From the NCBI GenBank assembly GCA_965112735.1, contig OZ218951.1, positions 1,488,001-1,552,000 on the forward strand: DNA of 64,000 nt, given 5' to 3'. Both the position numbers and the translations under genes were made by a program. Each line of letters starts with the position of its first letter. The first letter of the stretch is position 1. This stretch comes from Phaeosaccion multiseriatum (Eukaryota; Protista; Ochrophyta, other classes). Positions 14,188-46,404 of this stretch are shown piece after piece. Below the pieces are notes generated by a model, which was not told the origin of the DNA, made no database searches, and saw nothing but the letters and a program-made list of their open reading frames with translations.

Positions 14188-15328
14188 TGAGTAGTGTCAT
14201 CGATGACGGCAAAAGGTCAGTGAGAGCACCTTCCTCTTAGGAGGGATGACTCAGAAAACACCTTTCTCTCACTGGCTGAGGGTGGGAGATATATACGGGG
14301 GGTCAGGACAGGGAGAGGAGGGTCATGTGTATGACCGAGTATCTGACGGTTTCACTTGGCTAGAGAGGTGCCGGGTCAAGGCTGCGAGAGCGTCTGGCCC
14401 TGACTCTGCTGGAGAGGTGAGCGAGCGTCTGAAGGAGCGGGAGGGACGGGTGGAATCTGAAAAGGAATTATGTTATGTGTTGTGAGTGTCGTGGTCGTTG
14501 GAGGCTGCAGCGTGTGAAGGGAGAAGGGGAGGGAGAGGGTAGAGGGGGTGGGCTGTGATCCCTGTGAGCTGTGAGGGGCATGCATATGTCAACGAATCTG
14601 GAGCTGAGGACGGTGAGGTCGGGCCCTGTGCTGGGGTTTGGTGTGCTAGTGTCGTATCCATCGCAGTAGAGTGCAGCTGCCTACTCACTGTATTGGTGTA
14701 GAGGGAAGCTGCCTGCTCATCTCGGACTTTTTCAAGAATCTTATGTGAGTGGGTGATGAATGATAGCGTACTTGCTCAACCGTCTTTTGGCGTCTCGCGC
14801 ATACTTAAGAAACGCGAATGGCGTGTACCCATGAGGCCCCTTTGTGCAGAAGCAGGCCCATGCACCCAATCGACCGCACAGCACAACCCCCTAAAGGTGG
14901 CATCCGATGCCCATGATGCGTCTCCTGTGGGTATGTTTCTTCCAACAACACCTCTGCTCCCTCTAGACCCTGTTCCAAGCTCGTTTCCCCGCGGCAATGC
15001 GCTTCTCAACCAGCACCGTCGCAGTTCGGAAGTTTTGCCCCGTGCCCTTGCCCTTGGCCTTCTCTCGACGGCCTGCTGACAACAATCTCAGAGATAGCTC
15101 GCAGAGAAGAGAAGCAGCCCTTCCGTATTCATCGCCCTCCTTCCCGAGGGCTCTCTCGCTCGTAAAGTCGCTTGCCCATCACGGCCTGCCTCTCTAAGAG
15201 CGTGTATCAGGGGTCTGTGAGACCCGCCGGCTCGGAGCCCTGTATTGGTTGTTCCCCCCCCCGGGGGGAACCAATGTTTATAACCATTCTGCACCTCTTC
15301 AAAAGGTATTCGCTCTGCCCCAGGGAGC

Positions 15329-18300
15329 ATGATGATGTGAGTTCTTCCCCAGCAGTAAGCTCACTGAGCTGCCCCTCGGCTCCTGTTTCCTGATTCCTGG
15401 CGTGTGGCTCATCCTCCCCGTTCTGAGCTTGTCGAGTTATCCTCCCCCTTGCCGAAGTGCTTGATTTGTAGAATTAGGAGCCCCGCCCCTCTTCGCTCAC
15501 CGCACACCCCCCTCTCTAATACCTCAACGCTCTCTTTCGCTCTCTTGCTCTCTTGTGCTGTAACTTCTGCCTTGAGTACTCATCCTCCTCGTTCTTGAGC
15601 CATTGCTCCCTTTTACGAAGTGTTTTATTAAGTGCCCTTGCCTTTTGCCTCTCTACCCGCAGCGCCTTCCCCTCTCTGTCGCCTCAAGTCTCTGTTCGCT
15701 ATACTCTGCTCGCTCTTTCGGTTTTATTCCACTGTGTGACTACTGGCTTGAGTGTTGCTCCACTCTTCGTCTTGAGCTATCCGCTCCCTTGTCAAAGCGA
15801 TGAGAGCCCTTTTGCCTCTGCCCTCCTCTCTCTTCCTGCCCCGTGTTACCGTCGCTATGCCTCCACTGTCTGCTTCGCTCGCTCTCTTCTACTATGACGG
15901 ATGTCTTACACCTGCAGGCCATCCGATACGAGTGCGGAGCGGGAAGACCAGCAACGGATAGAGGAGATTATGCTCCAACTGCCCGAGTCCCCATGCCTCG
16001 CGTCCTTCCTTGACACCCACGCAAGCACCATCATGACCCTAATTGGTGTGGACGCCATTCGGGCCCAGGACCCTCTCACGGGCGCCATAATGTTCGAGGC
16101 CGGTGACGAGGAGGCCCGTCTTCATGAACCTGTTCTACTGTGGGAGACTCGCTCCATCGGCCGCTCCTTTGGAGTGCTGCACGGGCCCCTGCGCGCATAT
16201 GCGTGCATATCGAGCGAGAGCATGAACCTGGTGCTGACGAGGCTATCAAGAGCGCACGAGATTCAGAAGCAAGCAGCAGCGTCAGAGGGCGGGGAAGAGA
16301 AACCAAGGTCGGAAAGTTCTTTCTCTGCCTTCCTCGAGCAGGCCAAGAAGGAAGTACGTCCCTGGAGTGCGCGGGACCTTGGACTCATCTCCATCCTTGG
16401 CGATCACATGCTGGCTGCTATGAACACCAGAATGCTGCAGGACGTCAAGCAGGCGTTGGTGGAGAGCAACCTGCAGAGAGACGCCGCGGAGGAGATGAGC
16501 CGAACCGATCACGAGGTACGCAGTGGCTTGAGCAAATAGTGCTGCTTACTGGACCAGCTGTCACCACTACTTGATGTCTTCTGCCCTCCGTACCGTCATT
16601 CGCAATCCTCCCTACTCGTGTCACCCTCCCAATCCTGTCTACTGCCTCCCCCCGGCCACCCCTTTTGCGTCCACCCTCCCTTGTGCCTGGCGTGACAGTT
16701 CTTCGCGCACATGAGTCATGAGCTGAGGACGCCCTTCCACGGTGAGTTCAAAACTTCAGTCGCTAACGTAGTCACTCCCTTCCAGCTCATCACGCCCTGT
16801 CTCACTTTCTTTTTTTACTCAGACTCGATACACCAGCTGACTCGCTGTTCTCACCTCTGTCTGCTTCCTCTCCTCCTTTTTCGTTTCGCCACGAAGGAAT
16901 CATGAGCGCGATTCGAATCGTCCGTGAAGATCCAAGCATGAGCGAAGTAGAGCGGAGCGACTTTCTGGACACGGCCTTGCGCAGCGGGGCCACCATGCTC
17001 CAAACACTCGACAACCTTCTCAACATCGCCAAGCGCAAGAACGAGGTGCAGTGGAGCCTAGACCTATCCGTGTCTTTTGTCTTCCCAACTCGTGGCTGTG
17101 TGTCACTCCCATTTGGCATCCTCTTGACTTACTTCGCCCCTCTTGTTGCTTGTATATTGCCCTACATCATCGAAGCCGCCCGAAGCAAGCAACTTCAGAT
17201 TGGTCGCCATCGTGTCCAGTGTAATGGACGGCATGCGAAACTTTGCCAGCCTCAAGGGTATCACCCTCGAGGTCACGTACGATAGCAGCGCCAACGAAAC
17301 CGTGCGAGGGGACCAGGTCGGGCTCAGGCAAATAGCGTCCAACCTGGCCAACAACGCCGTCAAGTTCACGCCTACTGGCGGCCGGGTGACGGTGACTGCG
17401 GGCCTTTGCGACACGCTGACGGAGGCAATGGAACGGTGGCATTCTGCGGCTCAAAGCTACGCATCCTCCAGGATTCCTGATGCTGCGCCAACCGAGGCAC
17501 CCAGCCCTACGCAGGGCGGCAGCTTGAAGTGGTTGATGCTTACGGTGACCGACACCGGCTGCGGTATCCCCCGTGACCAGCTGGAGCGCGTTCTGGCGCC
17601 GTACGTACAGGTGTCCAGCGGGCCCACCAAAATGTATGAGGGCACTGGGCTGGGTCTGCACATTTGCAGGCTCGCCACACGCGACATGGGAGGCTACTTG
17701 GGAGTGGCATCAGAGGTGGACAAGGGCACCATGTTCTGCTGTATGGTGCCCCTCGAAGTGGTGGCTCCGGAGAGTGTCGATGTGACCGTCGAGTCTCTTC
17801 CTCACACCGCCGAGAAGCCCGACCTGTCCAGAAGCTACCTCATCGTGCTGGTCGATGACAGCAAGACCAATGTCAAGCTCGCCTCCCGTCAGATTGTGCG
17901 CGCTTTGGGCAGCAACACGGAGGTGCTTACGGCGGACAACGGCAAGGCCGGCTTTGAGCTGGTGCAGCGGTTATTCGAGGAGGGGCGCGTCATTCACGGA
18001 ATATTCATGGACTACCACATGCCCGTCATGTCCGGGGCGGACTGCATCGCTGCCATTCGCCGCTTCGAGGCTGAAACTGAAATTGGCGGGCGGCGGGAAA
18101 CCCCCATCGCAGCATTCACCGCAGACGTGACGGAGAAGTCAAAGGACGCGCTTCTTGAATCAGGAGCCACAACCATCATCTCGAAGCCTGTGGGCAAGCA
18201 TGACATCGAGGAGGCATGTTTCGCAATGGTTTCTGCCACAGCGCCCACGGAGCCTGAGGACAAGAAGCTGCCCGCCCCGCCCCGCGATGAGCAACTTCCT

Positions 18301-18591
18301 GCCCCGGCCAGTGGTGAGCAACTTCCTGCCCCGGCCAGTGGTGAGCAACTTCCTGCCCCGTCCAGTGGCGAGTCACTTCCCGTTCCACCCAGTGGTGAGC
18401 CCCTGCCCGCCCCGGCCAGCGAGGAGCCACTCTCCGCATCAGGGAGCACCCCGGCCAGTGGTGAACAACTGCCCGCACCGCCCAGTGCTGAGTCACTGCC
18501 CGGCTTGCCCAGTGGTGAGCCTTCACGACCTCGTACACCCCCACGGCCGCGGCGAAGGCTACGAAGGAGACCGGAATGCATCTGCTCCTGA
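15329..18591 (+). CDS. Hybrid histidine kinase copy 1: PHY-like domain - HisKA - HATPase_c - receiver - Pro-rich repeats - polybasic/CaaX-like end. Exons: probable 15329-15336, then 15918-16515, 16699-16741, 16897-17045, 17176-18591
   Basis: H-box FFAHMSHELRTPFHG, N-box NLANNAVKFT, G1 DTGCGI, G2 GTGLGL, receiver VDDS...FMDYHMP...SKP. N-terminal PRSESSFSAFLE..K.EVRPW resembles the PHY tongue PRxSF. The start micro-exon ATGATGAT|gtgagt is inferred from its conservation with copy 2. Confidence 0.85.
18268..18520 (+). repeat. 27-bp coding tandem repeat (LPAPASGEQ-like, about 9 units) in the kinase C-terminal tail
   Basis: gagcaacttcctgccccggccagtggt repeated, with degenerate copies. Confidence 0.9.
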
Positions 18592-19209
18592 TGAGGGGAT
18601 GCGTGTTTGTGAAGGGCCAACGGAAACCGCTTTGTATCTCAATGTATCTTTGCCATTTGTCCATCCTTGCAAATGGAGGCCTCAGCTTTGACAGAGGCCT
18701 CCGTTCCACCATTCTTTTCAGAGATTTCTTAGCCAGTGGTAGTGGAGCGTGGTAATCTCTGCCCCAGCGGTGTGCCCGGGCCGTCTTGAAGAGCAAGCGA
18801 CGACGACGACGACGACGAGGAGGAGGAGGAGGAGGAGGAGGAGGAGGTGGAGGAGGTGGAGGAGGACGAGGTGGAGGGGAGGGGACGAGGACAGAGAAGC
18901 TCCCCCACTCCTGCTTATGCCGCGCCGATCTGAACAATCAAACAACGGACACGCCTCCTCTTCCAAAGTACGTTGAGAGAGATCGCTGCTTTCATTCAAT
19001 GTTACTAAGGAGGACCCCCTCCTCTCTCGTCCTCATTCCCTTGGTTGCCGGATCCACCCACTCACGCACATGTCCAACATCGCAGTGTTGATGACACTCT
19101 TTCATCAGACGGACCGACGGACCGACGGGCCGATCGGTCGGGGACCGATCGCACTGATATTCTGAGTACTGGCAGCCATTCCTCCCTTCCACCCCCTGTT
19201 TCTGACTTC

Positions 19210-34617: not shown

Positions 34618-37600
34618 ATGGCGGAGAAGAAGAAGTACACGCCCACTACAAAGGCCTATCGTAACGACGAGTTCCTGGCCAGCGACGACGCTCGCCTCAT
34701 CCGCATCATCTGCGAATATGAGGTAGGTTGCGCCAATATCAGATCTCGAGCATGAAAGTAAACTGCTTTCTTTCTTTCAAGGCCAGCTCGAACCAAGAAG
34801 ACGGAGGAGGCTGTGTAACTGGGAGGAGGGAGCGGGAATGGGAATGCTTGTGCTTTACTCGTACAGGGGCGTAGACACAACCCCCCTGCGGAAGAATAAA
34901 TCTGTCTGACTTACCGATGTGATCAAAGGAGGAAGAGGGGTGCATGCTGTGAGAAACCCTTCGCATACCGCGGATTTCCCTCCTTCCTCTACGTGCCAAT
35001 GCACTGCAAAGACCCATCCCACTCGACGACCCTATTGTCCAGCGCCTTTCTGTTCTTCCTTCATCCTCTCCTTCTTTCTTCCCGTTTCACTGTCTCGTGT
35101 CATATTGCTTCACAGGAGACCCAACGCCGCCTCCGCCACAACGACATTCGGGCCACCATCCTTGTGTTTGGGAGCGCGCGGGCCAAGAATCAAGCCCAGT
35201 GGGACCAGGTGCGCGGCTGTACATTCTTTTCGTCGTCCAAATGAAGGGAAAGAGGGCCATTCTCACCCGCGCTTCCCTTTTGCCTCTCTCTGCATAAGCC
35301 TCTCTAACACACACTCAATCGCCCCATCCCCGGCCCATTGGCCGATTTCCTCTTGTCCTCCTCGTCCTGCTGCTGCTGCCCGCCACCCCTTCTCTCCTCT
35401 CCTCTCCCCCCGTCCTTGCAATACACTACAAAGGCGATGGAAGAGGCCAAGGCCCAAATGGCAGAGGCGGAGGGGGAGGGGCAGGACAGCGAAGCCTACA
35501 AGAAGGCCAAGCGGAATCTCACTAGGGTGGAGAAAACGGCGTGGATGGGAGAGATGCACGACAAGGTGAGCATACCATTCCTATCTCTCTGTCTTTCTCT
35601 CTCTTCTCTCTCAATCTGAACCTCCCTCCCCTCTCCTTTCTCTCTCTCTACCCCTCATGTCTCCTCCCACCACCCAACCCCTTGCCGTATCCTCTCTCCA
35701 TCCCCCTCCATCCCCCCCCCCCCCCACACGCAACACCCAAACAACACCCCAACAACAGATCGGCGAGCTGTCCCGGCTTCTGACGGAATGGGCCGTGAGC
35801 CCCGAGTGCACCATTGGCGGAGACCACACCATCTCCGGCGTCACCCGTTACCACAGCGCAAACCTCAGCAAGTTCCAGAGCATCAAGGTTTGTTAAAAGT
35901 TGCCGTTGCAGTCTGTTTTGAATACCATACTAGTACATGATTCAAGAGATAGATTACTCTAGGTTATGTACATGCATTTCCTTTTGGTGCCATCTTTATT
36001 ATCCAGGTTTTGCAACCGCAAAGTAACTGCTTCGATAACCCCACCCCACCCCCCCTCTCCGTTCTCCATCCGTCGTGATCTCATGTCATATGTCATATCA
36101 ATCTTCCTGACCCAAAAGGTATCCAAGAACCAATCCATGACGGCGCTGGACCAGCTGGGGAACAACGCGGAGGTACCGATAAAGCGATCAAGTAGCAGCA
36201 GCAGCTCTGAGGAGGAGGTGGAGGTGCAGCAGGGCATTTACATTTGCACGGGGGGAGGGCCTGGCTTCATGGAGGCCGCCAACAGGGTAGGAAGGAGAGA
36301 GAGAGAGGGAGGATGAAAGAGAAAGGGGGAGGGTGAGAGAGAAGGGAGGTAGGAGCGCGGCTGAGAAAGGGGGGGGGGGGGTGGGAGAAGAGAGAGGAGA
36401 GGAGGGGCCCACCACATCCCATCTCCTCCAATCTATCTGTGGCACTTTCACGTCTTTCGCCTCACTTACAAACGCATCGTTGTTCCCTCTCCCTGCCTCC
36501 CTATCCCACCCCTCTCTCCTCCTCCCACCCCTCTCTCCTCCTCCTTCCCCTCCCTCCCTCCCCCACCCCTCCTCCTCCTCCTCCTCCTCCTCCCCCTCAC
36601 TCAGGGCGCGGACAAGGTGGCTGGGGCGAAGAACATCGGCATGGGCATATCTTTGCCCTTCGAGGACGGCCTCAACGAGCATGTAACCAACAGTCTAGCC
36701 TTCTCCTTCCATTACTTCTTCACCAGGAAGGTGCGTGGGTGCGTGGAGCAGGCCTTCCTTCCTGCGTGTATGCCTGTCTGCCGTGCCCATATGCCGGCCC
36801 ATGCGATTGCCGGCCTGCCTCTCTGCCCATTCGCTGGCTGCCTGCCTGCCTGACATCTCTCTCCCTCCCCTCCCTCCCTCCCTCCCCCCCTCCCCCGCCC
36901 TGCCAGTTCTGGATGGTGTACCACTGCCAGGCGCTCATCGTGGCCCCCGGCGGGTTCGGTACTTTGGACGAGCTCTTTGAGGTGCTGACCCTCAAGCAAA
37001 CGGGGAAGGTGCGTGCCTTAACGTGTGTGTCGATGATGGTACCCATCTTCCTCGATCGAGTGGGTGGGGCCTCACTTGCTTCCCACCTACCTACCCACCT
37101 ACCTACCTACCTACCCACCTACCTACCCACCTACCTACCTACCCACCTACCTACCTACCCACCTACCTACCTACCCACCTACCTACCCACCTACCTGCCT
37201 ACCCACCCACCTACCTACCCACCTACCTACCTACCCACCTACCTACCCACCTACCTACCCACCTACCTACCCACCTACCTACCTACCCACCTACCTACCT
37301 ACCCACCTACCTACCTACCCACCTACCTGCCCACCTACCTACCCACCCACCTACCTACCCACCTACCTACCTACCCACCTACCCACCTACCTACCCACCT
37401 ACCTACCCACCTACCTGCCCACCTACCTACCCACCTACCTACCCACCTACCTACCTACCCATCCATTTTCCGACCCCTCGCCACCCCCCCTCCTGCACCT
37501 CACCCTCTCCCCGCTCCTGCTGCTGCATCTGCTGCCATCGGGCTGCCTGCTACCCCATGTACAGATCCAAAAGGACCTTCCGGTTGTGCTCTTCGGCAAG

Positions 37601-37987
37601 GCCTATTGGGATCAGATCTTGAACTGGCAGGTGAGTTCAAGTGAGCCCAAATGGGCCTCTCATTATATGCCACCCCCAAACACCCCTACATGGGGTCCCC
37701 AACAAGCCTCGCATCCTTCTTCCTCTCCCCACTTGCCTTGCTTGCCTTTCCCGTTGCGCGTGCTCCTTACTCTACCCGTTTTTCTGCTTTGCTTGTGTGT
37801 GTCTCTCTCTCCCCATCCACTGCCATCCTTCCCCCCGTCCCCCGTCCAGGCGATGGTTGACTTCGGCACGGTGGCCCAAGAAGACGTAGATGCCCTCTTC
37901 ACCACAGACTCGGCCGAGGATGCCGCTGAATACCTCAAGCAGCAGCTCAGCAACAACAATGACCACGCCAACCAGAAGGACACATAG
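34618..37987 (+). CDS. LOG: LOG-family (lysine decarboxylase-like / nucleotide phosphoribohydrolase) protein. Exons: 34618-34722, 35116-35208, 35434-35565, 35759-35887, 36119-36286, 36605-36730, 36907-37008, 37565-37630, 37850-37987
   Basis: Motifs [61 protein letters not shown]. Confidence 0.92.
37082..37460 (+). repeat. (CCTA/CCCA)n tetranucleotide array in LOG intron 37009-37564
   Basis: Seen directly. Confidence 0.95.
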
Positions 37988-43396: not shown

Positions 43397-46300
43397 TCAA
43401 AAGCACGCGCAAAATGGCCTCCGTCGCGGCCGTGGGGGTGAACGAGGGCTCGACGGCTCATCAGTGGCCGGGGCGGGCATGGGCTCACCAGTGGCTGGCA
43501 GGGGCTCAAGAGTGGCCCGGGCTGCTGGAAGTGGCTCATCGCTGGGCTGGGCGCCCCCTGGGGCGGGCATGGGCTCATCAGTGGCTGGCAGGGGCTCAAG
43601 AGTGGCCCGTGGCTCATCGCTGGGCTGGGCGCCCCCTGGGGCGGGCAGGGGCTCACCACTGGGCGGCGCGGGCAGCTTCCTCTCCTCAGGCAACGTGGAT
43701 GCTGCTGCCGGGGCGGCTCCCACATCTCCGCTGGCAGAGACCATTGCGAAACAAGCCTCTTCAATAGCCTTCTTGCCCACAGGCTTCGAGATGATGGTTG
43801 TGGCTCCTGCCGCTAGTAGGGCGTTCTTTGACTTCTCCGTCACGTCTGCGGTGAATGCTGCGATGGGGGTCGCCTGCAGCACGCCAGTTTCAGTTTCAGC
43901 CTCGAAGCGGCGAATGGCAGCGATGCAGTCCGCCCCGGACATGACGGGCATGTGGTAGTCCATAAATATCCCATGAATGACGCGCCCCTCCTCGAATAAC
44001 CGCTGCACCAGCTCAAAGCCGGCCTTGCCGTTGTCCGCCGTAAGCACCTCCGTGTTGCTGCCCAAAGCGCGCACGATCTGACGGGAGGCGAGCTTGACAT
44101 TGGTCTTGCTGTCATCGACCAGCACGATGAGGTAGCTTCTGGACAGGTCGGGCTTCTCTGCTGTGCGAGGAAGAGACTCGACGGTCACATCGACACTCTC
44201 CGGAACCACCACTTCGAGGGGCACCATACAGCAGAACATGGTGCCCTTGTCCACCTCTGATGCCACTCCCAAGTAGCCTCCCATCTCGCGTGTGTTGACC
44301 CTGCAAATGTGCAGACCCAGCCCAGTGCCCTCGTACATCTTGGTGGACCCAATGGATACGTACGGCGACAGAACGCTCTCCAGCTTATCGGCGGGGATAC
44401 CGCAGCCGGTGTCGGTCACCGTAAGCATCAACCATCCAAAGCGGCGACCCTGCGTAGAGCTGGGTGTCTCGGCTGGCGCAGCATCGGGAATGCTGGAGAA
44501 TGCGTAGCTTTGAGCCGCGGAATGCCACCGTTCCATTGCCTCCGTCAGCGTGTCGCAAAGGCCCACCGTCGCAGTCACCCGGCCGCCAGTGGGCGTGAAC
44601 TTGATGGCGTTGTTGACCAGGTTGGCCGCGATTTGCCTGAGCCCGACCTGGTCCCCTCGCACGGTTTCGTCGGCGCTGCTATCGTACGTGACCCCGAGGG
44701 TGATACCCTTGAGGCTGGCATAGTCGCGCATGTCATCCATTACGCTGGAAACAACAGCGGCAAAACTGAAGTTGCTTACTTCGGGCGCCTTCGATGATGC
44801 AGCAATGAAGCGACAAGAGGGGCGCGCGTCAAGGGAGGTGAAGCAAGTCAGGAGGAAAGAGGGACGCACCTCGTTCTTGCGCTTGGCGATGTTGAGAGGG
44901 TTGTCGAGTGTTTGGAGCATGGTGATGCCGCTGTGCAAGGCCGTGTCCAGAATGTCGTTCCGCTCTACTTCGCTCATGCTTGGGTCTTCACGGACGATTC
45001 GAATCGCGCTCATGACTCCTTCGTAGCGAAACGAAAAAGGAGGAGAGGAAGCAGACAGAGGTGAGAACAGCGAGTCAGCTGGTGTATCGAGTCTGAGTAA
45101 AAAAAGAAAGTGAGACAGGGCGTGATGAGCTGGAAGGGAGTGTCTACGTTAGCGACTGAAGTCTGGCTCGTGGGCACGGCAATGGGACTCGTTTTGAACT
45201 CACCGTGGAAGGGCGTCCTCAACTCGTGTGACATGTGCGCGAAGAACTGTCACACCAGGCACACGGGAGGGTGGACGCAAAAGGGGTGGCCGGGGGGAGG
45301 CAGTAGGCAGGATTGGGAGGGTGACACGAGTAGGGAGGATTGCGAATGACGGTACGGAGGGCAGAAGACAGCAAGTAGTGGTGACAGCTGGTCCAGTAAG
45401 CAGCACTATTTGCTCAAGCCACTGCGTACCTCGTGATCGGTTCGGCTCTTCTCCAGTGCGGCGTCTCTTTGCAGATTGCTCTCCACCAGCGCATCTTGCA
45501 CGGCTTCAAGCATCTTGGTGTTTGTAGCGGCAAGCACGTGGTCCCCCAGGGTGGAGATGAGGCTCACATCACGCTCACTCCAGGGGCGAACCTCCTTCTT
45601 CATCTCCTCGAGGAAGGCAGCGAAAGAATTTCCCGACATTGGTCCTTCTTCTCTGGTCTCGGACGCTGCTGCTTGCCTTTGAAACTCGTGTGCCCTTGAT
45701 AGCCTCGTCAGTACGAGGTTCAGGCTGTTGCTCGATATACACGCATAGGCGCGTAAGGGCCCATGTATCACCCCAAAGGAGCGGCCCACAACTCCCAGCA
45801 TGATGGGTTCATGATGTCGGGCCTGCTCGTCGCCCACCTCGAACAGGATGGCGCCCGTGAGGGGGTCCTGGGCCCGAATGGCGTCCACACCAATTAAGGT
45901 CATGATGGTGTTCGCGTGGGTCTGAAGGAAAGCCACGACGCCCCGCGACTCAGGCAGAGCCTGCAGAATCTCCTCCATGCGTAGCTTGGCTTCCCGCGTC
46001 GCACTCTCCTCGGATGACCTGCCCGTGTAAGGTGTCACAGTAGCAGGCGAGCGAAGCATGTGGAAGGAGAGGCGGAGAGCAAGGGCTCCAACACATTAGG
46101 AAGGGTGCTCCACCTCGTGCAGTTCGAGGTACTGGACAGATGCATCACGGATAACTCGAGACGGGGAAGACAAGTCCACACAAGCCAGCCCTCACAGTGC
46201 CAGAGAGCCAGCGAAGCAGAGACATGAGGCAATATAGACAGAAAGGCGATGCGGCAGAGGCAAAAGGGCTCTAGCTAACGACTTCGGCGAGGGGGCGGAT

Positions 46301-46404
46301 AACTCAAGACCGGGATGATGAGCCCCCCACGCGAGCCAGCAGCACGAGCCGAGAGTAGGGTGAATAACGTTTTGCTGCTACAGGGGTGGGGAGTCTCACA
46401 TCAT
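43397..46404 (-). CDS. Hybrid histidine kinase copy 2 (inverted paralogue of copy 1). Exons: probable 46404-46400, then 46018-45430, 45246-45204, 45018-44870, 44788-43397
   Basis: Same intron positions as copy 1; H-box HELRTPFHG, NLVNNAIKFT, DTGCGI, GTGLGL, receiver FMDYHMP; ends RPRRRPFCACF*. Confidence 0.83.

Follow-up and report, generated by a model that had tools for sequence, protein, structure and literature searches.

Two predicted genes of Phaeosaccion multiseriatum join a phytochrome-type PHY domain to a histidine kinase-receiver module in the absence of a PAS-GAF half

Gene models and organisation of the locus

The present analysis concerns a stretch of 64,000 nucleotides (nt) from the ochrophyte alga Phaeosaccion multiseriatum (assembly GCA_965112735.1, contig OZ218951.1, positions 1,488,001 to 1,552,000), hereafter the window, and two paralogous genes predicted within it, copy 1 on the forward and copy 2 on the reverse strand, in which a homologue of the phytochrome PHY domain is fused to a histidine kinase and receiver (REC) module. 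The DNA of the window is GC-rich (about 58-60%), eukaryotic and interrupted by introns. Both copies display the same exons in the same order with four predicted introns each, all of the GT-AG type and at identical positions, and the spliced frames are open throughout, giving predicted models of 736 amino acids for copy 1 and 725 amino acids for copy 2 (Table 1). The two copies are part of an inverted duplication detected by self-blastn (15871-18238 vs 46058-43732) and lie in convergent orientation about 25 kb apart with multi-exon cellular genes in between. A preliminary description of this DNA had quoted peptides from the PHY-bearing exon of copy 1, here exon A, and delimited that exon; the peptides were recovered at the positions given for them and the exon borders were confirmed, position 15918 following an AG acceptor and position 16515 preceding a GT donor.

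Table 1. Features of the two PHY-kinase copies, in positions of the window
Feature	Position	Strand	Basis or remark
Copy 1, open reading frame (ORF) holding the PHY exon	15901-16539	+	Contains every peptide quoted in the preliminary description
Copy 1, putative first coding micro-exon ATGAT, then donor GTGAGT	15332-15336	+	DNA reading, spliced frame open; start codon + 2 nt, phase matches exon A
Copy 1, exon A: complete PHY-domain homologue, end of GAF-PHY spine helix, helix into kinase	15918-16515	+	PHY HMM, hhalign, tblastn, AF2/Foldseek
Copy 1, degenerate tongue, R108...F135	16240-16323	+	Alignments
Copy 1, exon B, 43 nt: H-box FFAHMSHELRTPFH with phospho-accepting His	16699-16741	+	15/16 residues as in phytochrome H-boxes
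Copy 1, exon C, 149 nt: second half of HisKA/DHp	16897-17045	+	Pfam, tblastn, spliced model
Copy 1, exon D: HATPase_c, REC, Pro-rich repeat tail, polybasic run, C-terminal CICS	17176-18591	+	Pfam, catalytic residues
Copy 2 (paralogue), ORF holding the PHY exon	45406-46059	-	ORF list
Copy 2, putative first coding micro-exon ATGAT, then GTGAG	46400-46404	-	DNA reading, blastn
Copy 2, exon A: PHY-domain homologue, 72% amino acid identity to copy 1	45430-46018	-	PHY HMM, alignment, tblastn
Copy 2, degenerate tongue	45622-45705	-	Alignments
Copy 2, exon B, 43 nt: H-box	45204-45246	-	DNA reading, spliced model
Copy 2, exon C, 149 nt: DHp second helix	44870-45018	-	DNA reading, spliced model
Copy 2, exon D: HATPase_c, REC, Pro-rich tail, polybasic run, C-terminal CACF	43397-44788	-	tblastn, spliced model, catalytic residues
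Pro-rich, polybasic, CaaX-like tail, both copies	18268-18591; 43397-43700	+; -	
Dispersed unit in putative intron 1	15406-15458, 15578-15630, 15769-15822 (copy 1); 46324-46253 (copy 2)		
High-identity tracts between copies	16470-17040 and 17240-18140 vs 45475-44875 and 44720-43830		
Most distal collinear homology blocks between copies	14969-15032 vs 46860-46779	+ (first block)	blastn, word 7; 14/14 and 32/39 matches

The coding sequence of each copy putatively opens with a micro-exon of five nucleotides. The ATGAT|gtgag motif on which this start is based, already pointed out in the preliminary description, is present in both copies with an 11/11 match (GATGATGTGAG), and local blastn pairs it collinearly between the copies in upstream DNA whose identity is about 55% elsewhere, whereas the motifs remain unpaired when the two upstream regions are aligned globally with MAFFT. 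Taken alone, the shared 11-mer is not significant (E 0.96). Alternative in-frame ATGs occur in the extended ORFs (15901; 46059), and as their positions are not conserved between the copies, the micro-exon start is mildly favoured. With both start models the protein begins within about 15 residues of one point, the end of the GAF-PHY spine helix. The putative intron 1 also holds a dispersed unit of about 50-60 nt (…CTCATCCTCC.CGTTCTTGAG…CCGAAGT…), common to both paralogues, which may be a repeat with a regulatory role or the remains of a minisatellite.

Identity of exon A as a PHY domain

The best database relative of the 482-amino-acid ORF of the last exon was P0151, an algal-type phytochrome fragment, ahead of all others by about 11 orders of magnitude, and BLASTP aligned exon A collinearly with the PHY domain of P0151 up to an identical H-box. 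A search with the Pfam PHY profile, the check proposed in the preliminary description, did produce a match on exon A (E 0.0016), but this match stayed below the gathering score (18.3 bits vs 27) and was restricted to the C-terminal third of the domain. Therefore, family-specific profiles were built. About 65 stramenopile, phaeoviral and cyanobacterial phytochromes were collected with P0151 as query and separate PAS, GAF and PHY profiles were prepared with the window sequences excluded. The PHY hidden Markov model (HMM), made from 59 stramenopile/cyanobacterial phytochrome PHY domains, matched exon A of copy 1 (E 1.4e-22) and of copy 2 (E 1.1e-20) over HMM positions 6-203 of about 205, and these were exactly the two pieces recognised out of 1,524 six-frame pieces of the window. 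Comparison of the window copies with the PHY profile by hhalign gave a probability of 99.3% (E 1.4e-19, 192 columns) vs 0.1% with the phytochrome GAF and PAS profiles. Both methods thus returned the PHY/GAF-fold match whose lack the preliminary description had named as counter-evidence to its proposal of PHY homology, which stands.

Exon A was also matched in tblastn by phytochromes of Ectocarpus, Tribonema and Sphacelaria, the Ectocarpus sequence P0306 reaching E 3e-11 with copy 2, and the nearest ESM Atlas feature cluster was PHY, with 175 of 256 features shared. The AlphaFold (AF2) model obtained with a 61-sequence alignment of PHY domains had a predicted local distance difference test (pLDDT) score of 88.6 and showed an alpha/beta core of the GAF type from which a long helix exits; its top Foldseek matches were almost all phytochrome photosensory modules, so that the structural check suggested beforehand agrees with the profiles, the alignment itself being PHY-based.

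An alternative identity for the N-terminal domain would be a generic small-molecule-binding GAF whose phytochrome likeness is superficial. A profile search of 1.84 billion representative proteins yielded no orthologue of exon A below 1e-30 and returned mostly multi-GAF cyanobacterial kinases matching only query positions of about 142-196, a stretch corresponding to a terminal-helix motif common to GAF-fold domains, with phytochromes absent from the best 150 matches. These matches and the sub-threshold Pfam score are in favour of a generic GAF. On the other hand, hhalign gives 99.3% for PHY over the full length against 0.1% for the phytochrome GAF, the domain lines up collinearly with phytochromes across the PHY-H-box junction, the nearest ESM Atlas cluster is PHY, and a tongue-length insert with the conserved P...SF..F.E....W is kept, which leaves the generic GAF barely credible. 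In further searches no relatives of the exon profile were found in the viral and metagenome contigs scanned, and exon A gave only insignificant matches in a sequence search of the PDB.

Kinase-receiver module, C-terminal tail and selection

Downstream of the PHY domain, Pfam recognised HATPase_c (5e-22) and Response_reg (5.5e-13) in copy 1. At the catalytic positions checked (H-box His, N, G1, G2 and the receiver D-D-D-T-K), both copies carry the commonest residue of the family in 14 cases out of 14. Both models end in a tail of about 110 amino acids with a Pro-rich repeat, a polybasic run and a CaaX-like end (CICS in copy 1, CACF in copy 2), which was absent in all 18 phytochrome-family homologues inspected.

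Between the copies, the PHY exon has a synonymous divergence (dS) of 0.54 and a non-synonymous divergence (dN) of 0.17, giving a dN/dS of 0.32 (bootstrap 95% confidence interval 0.21-0.49; Fisher p 2.8e-8). A ratio of this size at such a dS indicates that the PHY exon has been under purifying selection through a long divergence, and it lends support to the earlier statement that the gene has been kept in two copies. The kinase half differs by a dS of only 0.13-0.17. At the DNA level identity is a mosaic, with 72-82% over the PHY exon, 97-98% over introns 1 and 2, and 93-99% over most kinase-receiver exons taken together with introns 1 and 2. The low dS combined with near-identical introns points to later gene-conversion tracts between the inverted paralogues, from about position 16470 onward.

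These data bear on whether the copies are non-functional relics, that is, truncated duplicates in decay, derived either from a phytochrome or from a viral gene that had been inserted. The loss of the sensor half and the drift of the tongue motifs described below could be understood in this way, as could the absence of orthologues from the profile search; in addition, the four public runs matching the locus are unspliced DNA contigs of one sample with no splice joints, so that the genes are predicted ones. However, decay is difficult to reconcile with complete frames over four introns with conserved GT-AG sites in both copies, with the retention of every catalytic residue and of five of the seven near-invariant PHY core positions, and with the dN/dS of the PHY exon. 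Consequently, the relic explanation is considered clearly unlikely.

Absence of the PAS-GAF half

A GAF HMM built from 54 family members, run over the same 1,524 six-frame pieces of the 64 kb, found no bilin-binding GAF (best E 6.9), and a PAS HMM run over these pieces found no N-terminal PAS (best E 4.6). With 16 full-length phytochromes as tblastn queries against the whole 64 kb, nothing was matched by their first 300 residues or so. PAS or GAF exons are thus absent within 15.9 kb upstream of copy 1 and 17.6 kb upstream of copy 2, and the earlier claim that no PAS/GAF coding sequence precedes either copy can be extended to the entire window. As the GAF domain is usually better conserved than PHY in the phytochrome family, an overlooked GAF is unlikely.

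The surroundings of the two copies were consistent with this result. The upstream same-strand neighbour of copy 1 is a long WD40-like multi-exon gene (about 2868-14184/14185, +), that of copy 2 a Band_7/SPFH gene (about 51350 to 47470, -), and in each case about 1 kb separates the neighbour from the micro-exon. Going upstream, the copies cease to be homologous at about 14969 and 46860, from which it follows that the duplicated unit was without PAS-GAF exons; it is therefore inferred that the truncation predates the duplication.

A control was provided by the database protein P0283 (PHY-HisKA-HATPase_c-REC, 601 amino acids; L002 4673-7806), which has the same apparent architecture and is preceded by a 412-amino-acid GAF ORF 90 nt upstream. 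Judging from this arrangement, P0283 results from a gene call that cut an intron-bearing algal phytochrome in two, and at least this seemingly PHY-only entry of metagenome protein sets is an artefact of gene calling. No GAF ORF of this kind was present near the window copies.

The case of P0283 shows how readily GAF exons are overlooked, and the public runs at the locus consist of unspliced DNA; both could be taken to mean that the copies are ordinary full-length phytochrome genes with overlooked PAS-GAF exons, located far upstream or outside the window, hidden by an assembly error or joined by trans-splicing. Against such an explanation, the GAF and PAS HMMs and the 16 tblastn queries were blank in the 64 kb while the more divergent PHY was found at E <=1e-20, different and unrelated same-strand genes end about 1 kb before each copy, the inter-copy homology ends upstream as described, and tongue motifs needing a GAF partner have decayed in both copies. 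Missed exons therefore appear very unlikely. The preliminary description had proposed a PHY domain fused to a histidine kinase and REC with no PAS-GAF, and this architecture is supported at the DNA level, the genomic evidence being opposed to upstream PAS-GAF exons.

Degeneration of the tongue

In phytochromes, these residues of the tongue contact the GAF domain at its bilin pocket, and the Pr and Pfr states differ in the fold of the tongue. The tongue was examined in an alignment (A2, the one used for AF2) of 61 sequences including the two window copies, in which seven positions are at least 90% conserved and the W(G/A)G and PRxSF motifs both reach this level. Five of the seven near-invariant PHY positions are kept in both copies (G62, R108, P129, F135 and W149), and the two lost in both, W117 and G119, correspond to the first and last residue of W(G/A)G, which is replaced by K-Q-A in copy 1 and R-Q-A in copy 2. 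The PRxSF motif has become PRSESSF in copy 1 and PMSGNSF in copy 2, neither with an Arg at the canonical spacing, and the tongue is shorter by 4-6 residues, with the Ser-Phe of PRxSF and the downstream F..E....W retained. The loss of the first motif and the disruption of the second, both noted in the preliminary description, were thereby borne out. Its comparison with the plant-type PRSSFKAFLE holds as a resemblance but not as a relationship, the true kin being the phaeovirus-type phytochromes of brown algae.

Selective decay of the tongue contacts is what would be expected once the GAF partner is gone. The same observation is relevant to a split phytochrome, in which the PHY-HK-REC protein (HK, histidine kinase) would pair in trans with a separate PAS-GAF bilin protein and remain light-regulated. 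Conservation of the spine-helix remnant and of the PHY core would fit such a pairing, yet neither copy retains the tongue-docking residues (the first and last of W(G/A)G, the canonically spaced Arg of PRxSF), and decay of these contacts argues against complementation in trans, making a split phytochrome highly improbable.

Some otherwise full-length members of the family (P0269, P0280 and P0266) also have a degenerate or deleted tongue, lacking WGG and/or PRxSF. To judge from these members, tongue loss is not unique to truncated genes.

Phylogeny and comparison with known systems

Trees were computed on the PHY-HK-REC region, a quick one with 68 rows and a careful one with 36 rows. The window copies are sisters. 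They group with Ectocarpus sp. P0306 and P0315, Sphacelaria P0294 and P0296 and metagenomic relatives, the support being SH-aLRT 98 in the quick tree and UFBoot/SH-aLRT 95/92 in the careful one, where the Feldmannia species virus kinase P0314 comes out as sister (94/92). A tree in which the copies were made to join the cellular brown-algal clade (Ishige, Ectocarpus siliculosus) was worse by 61 log-likelihood units and was rejected by the approximately unbiased (AU) test (p 2.8e-6). A phylogeny against brown-algal and phaeovirus kinases had been recommended beforehand, and it places both copies inside the phaeovirus-associated brown-algal phytochrome clade.

According to published work, several Ectocarpus histidine kinases, one phytochrome included, are located in inserted DNA of phaeoviruses or originate from it (PMC6324907; bioRxiv 10.1101/2024.02.19.579948). 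In the window, a recent phaeovirus insertion was not recognised, each copy having four predicted introns and multi-exon cellular neighbours (WD40-like, Band_7 and LOG-like), and no viral hallmark genes were seen among the large ORFs of the window. Given these introns and neighbours, the genes would have been long domesticated if their origin is viral.

The phaeovirus-associated phytochromes (Feldmannia species virus P0314; Ectocarpus sp. P0306 and P0315; Sphacelaria rigidula P0294 and P0296) are collinear with the window genes over PHY-HisKA-HATPase_c-REC, their kinase-receiver parts being 31-36% identical and the H-box FFAHMSHELRTPFHG common to both. Where complete, their N-terminus is of the PAS type, and seven of eight have a precomputed Pfam GAF match, the N-terminally partial P0315 having none. 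They keep W(G/A)G in eight of eight and PRxSF at the canonical spacing in seven of eight, P0306 having an insertion, and none of the eight has the Pro-rich/CaaX tail. The window genes, by contrast, possess this tail, are without PAS-GAF, carry four introns and stand among cellular genes. Cellular stramenopile phytochromes (the Ectocarpus siliculosus phytochrome-like P0302, Ishige okamurae P0279, Tribonema minus P0276 and the diatom sequences P0289 and P0300) have a homologous PHY and belong to the same superfamily with the same output module, but form a separate clade and have the full PAS-GAF-PHY photosensory module.

Natural partial phytochromes (PMC8508867; PMC11264168) include the knotless phytochromes (Cph2-type, GAF-PHY) and the cyanobacteriochromes (GAF only). 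Both groups keep the bilin-binding GAF and lose PAS and/or PHY, whereas the window genes keep PHY without GAF, so that a site for the chromophore is missing. Generic eukaryotic-algal hybrid histidine kinases share HisKA-HATPase_c-REC and all catalytic residues with the window genes but carry a PAS, CHASE, MASE1 or transmembrane sensor (Kabbara et al. 2018, PMC6324907) in place of the PHY remnant. No description of a PHY-only kinase was found in the literature searched. On these comparisons the window genes belong to the phytochrome lineage by descent and are not phytochromes by definition, as the defining GAF/bilin features were looked for in the window and not found.

Other features of the window

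A LOG-like ORF lies between the copies at 36439-37644. Contig depth over the copy 1 gene (15955-18700) was 1.6-4x that of the single-copy flank, and loose ends at 17525 and 17563 continue into unrelated sequence, which suggests that the genome contains further paralogues, or pieces of the HATPase_c region, at other places. A long and perfect tandem array of a 15-nt unit lies between 31120 and 32000 (+) and translates in one frame as (GLGWV)n, and other low-complexity arrays are numerous in the window (poly-S, poly-P, PTYL and CA repeats).

Interpretation and significance

Several points weigh against interpreting the two copies as conserved PHY-kinase genes of phytochrome descent. Agreement of the AF2 model with the PHY fold is partly built in, the alignment supplied consisting of PHY domains, and this predicted structure is weaker evidence than the profiles; with the two paralogues only, the AF2 model is poor (pLDDT 46.6). 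The apparent conservation rests on one paralogue pair whose orthologues were not found in the searches described, and gene conversion between the copies complicates the rate estimates. The expression, 5' end and splice pattern of both genes are predictions from the DNA. Finally, the 'phaeovirus-type' label of the clade depends on one viral sequence on a long branch.

Taken together, it is nevertheless likely that the two convergent multi-exon nuclear genes code for hybrid histidine kinases of about 730 amino acids which are N-terminally truncated descendants of a phaeovirus-type brown-algal phytochrome, while the chromophore-less phytochrome derivative as such is judged to be real and its predicted protein probably functional. 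In the absence of PAS and of a bilin-binding GAF, the predicted protein would be unable to hold a bilin and would be light-blind on its own. What remains is the last 20 or so residues of the GAF-PHY spine helix, a complete PHY domain of GAF fold, the PHY-to-DHp helix and a catalytically intact HisKA-HATPase_c-REC, a truncated kinase to which a lineage-specific Pro-rich, polybasic and CaaX-like tail has been added. The PHY remnant would no longer read a chromophore pocket, leaving the residues contacting that pocket free to drift, and is probably a structural or regulatory cap setting the register of the DHp coiled coil, or else a protein-interaction surface. The kinase most likely autophosphorylates His208 and relays the phosphate to Asp544 and then into an HPt/response regulator pathway, where it would constitute a light-independent input, possibly tethered to a membrane via its tail.

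The PHY-only kinase may also compete or pair with a full-length phytochrome. A more specific proposal, which must be regarded as rather doubtful, is that of a dedicated light-blind partner setting the gain or dark baseline of phytochrome signalling, either by forming a heterodimer with full-length phytochrome through the spine helix, PHY core and DHp, or by sequestering an HPt/response-regulator partner at the membrane through its prenylatable tail. If true, the kinase would amount to a 'decoy subunit' of natural origin acting on a photoreceptor kinase, and its gene may have been domesticated from a giant virus.

To our knowledge, phytochrome reductions shed PAS (knotless) or PAS and PHY (cyanobacteriochromes) and always keep the bilin-binding GAF. 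A selected and duplicated derivative consisting of PHY and kinase only would be the reverse of these reductions, and would add a case to the evidence for recruitment of brown-algal-lineage histidine kinases from phaeoviruses and their later remodelling, here by gain of introns, loss of a domain and addition of a tail. It would also represent a natural experiment on the effect of PHY and its helical link on a histidine kinase deprived of the chromophore signal, a question usually approached by engineered truncations, and as a clean natural truncation backed by selection it may be informative for the mechanics of photoreceptor kinases.

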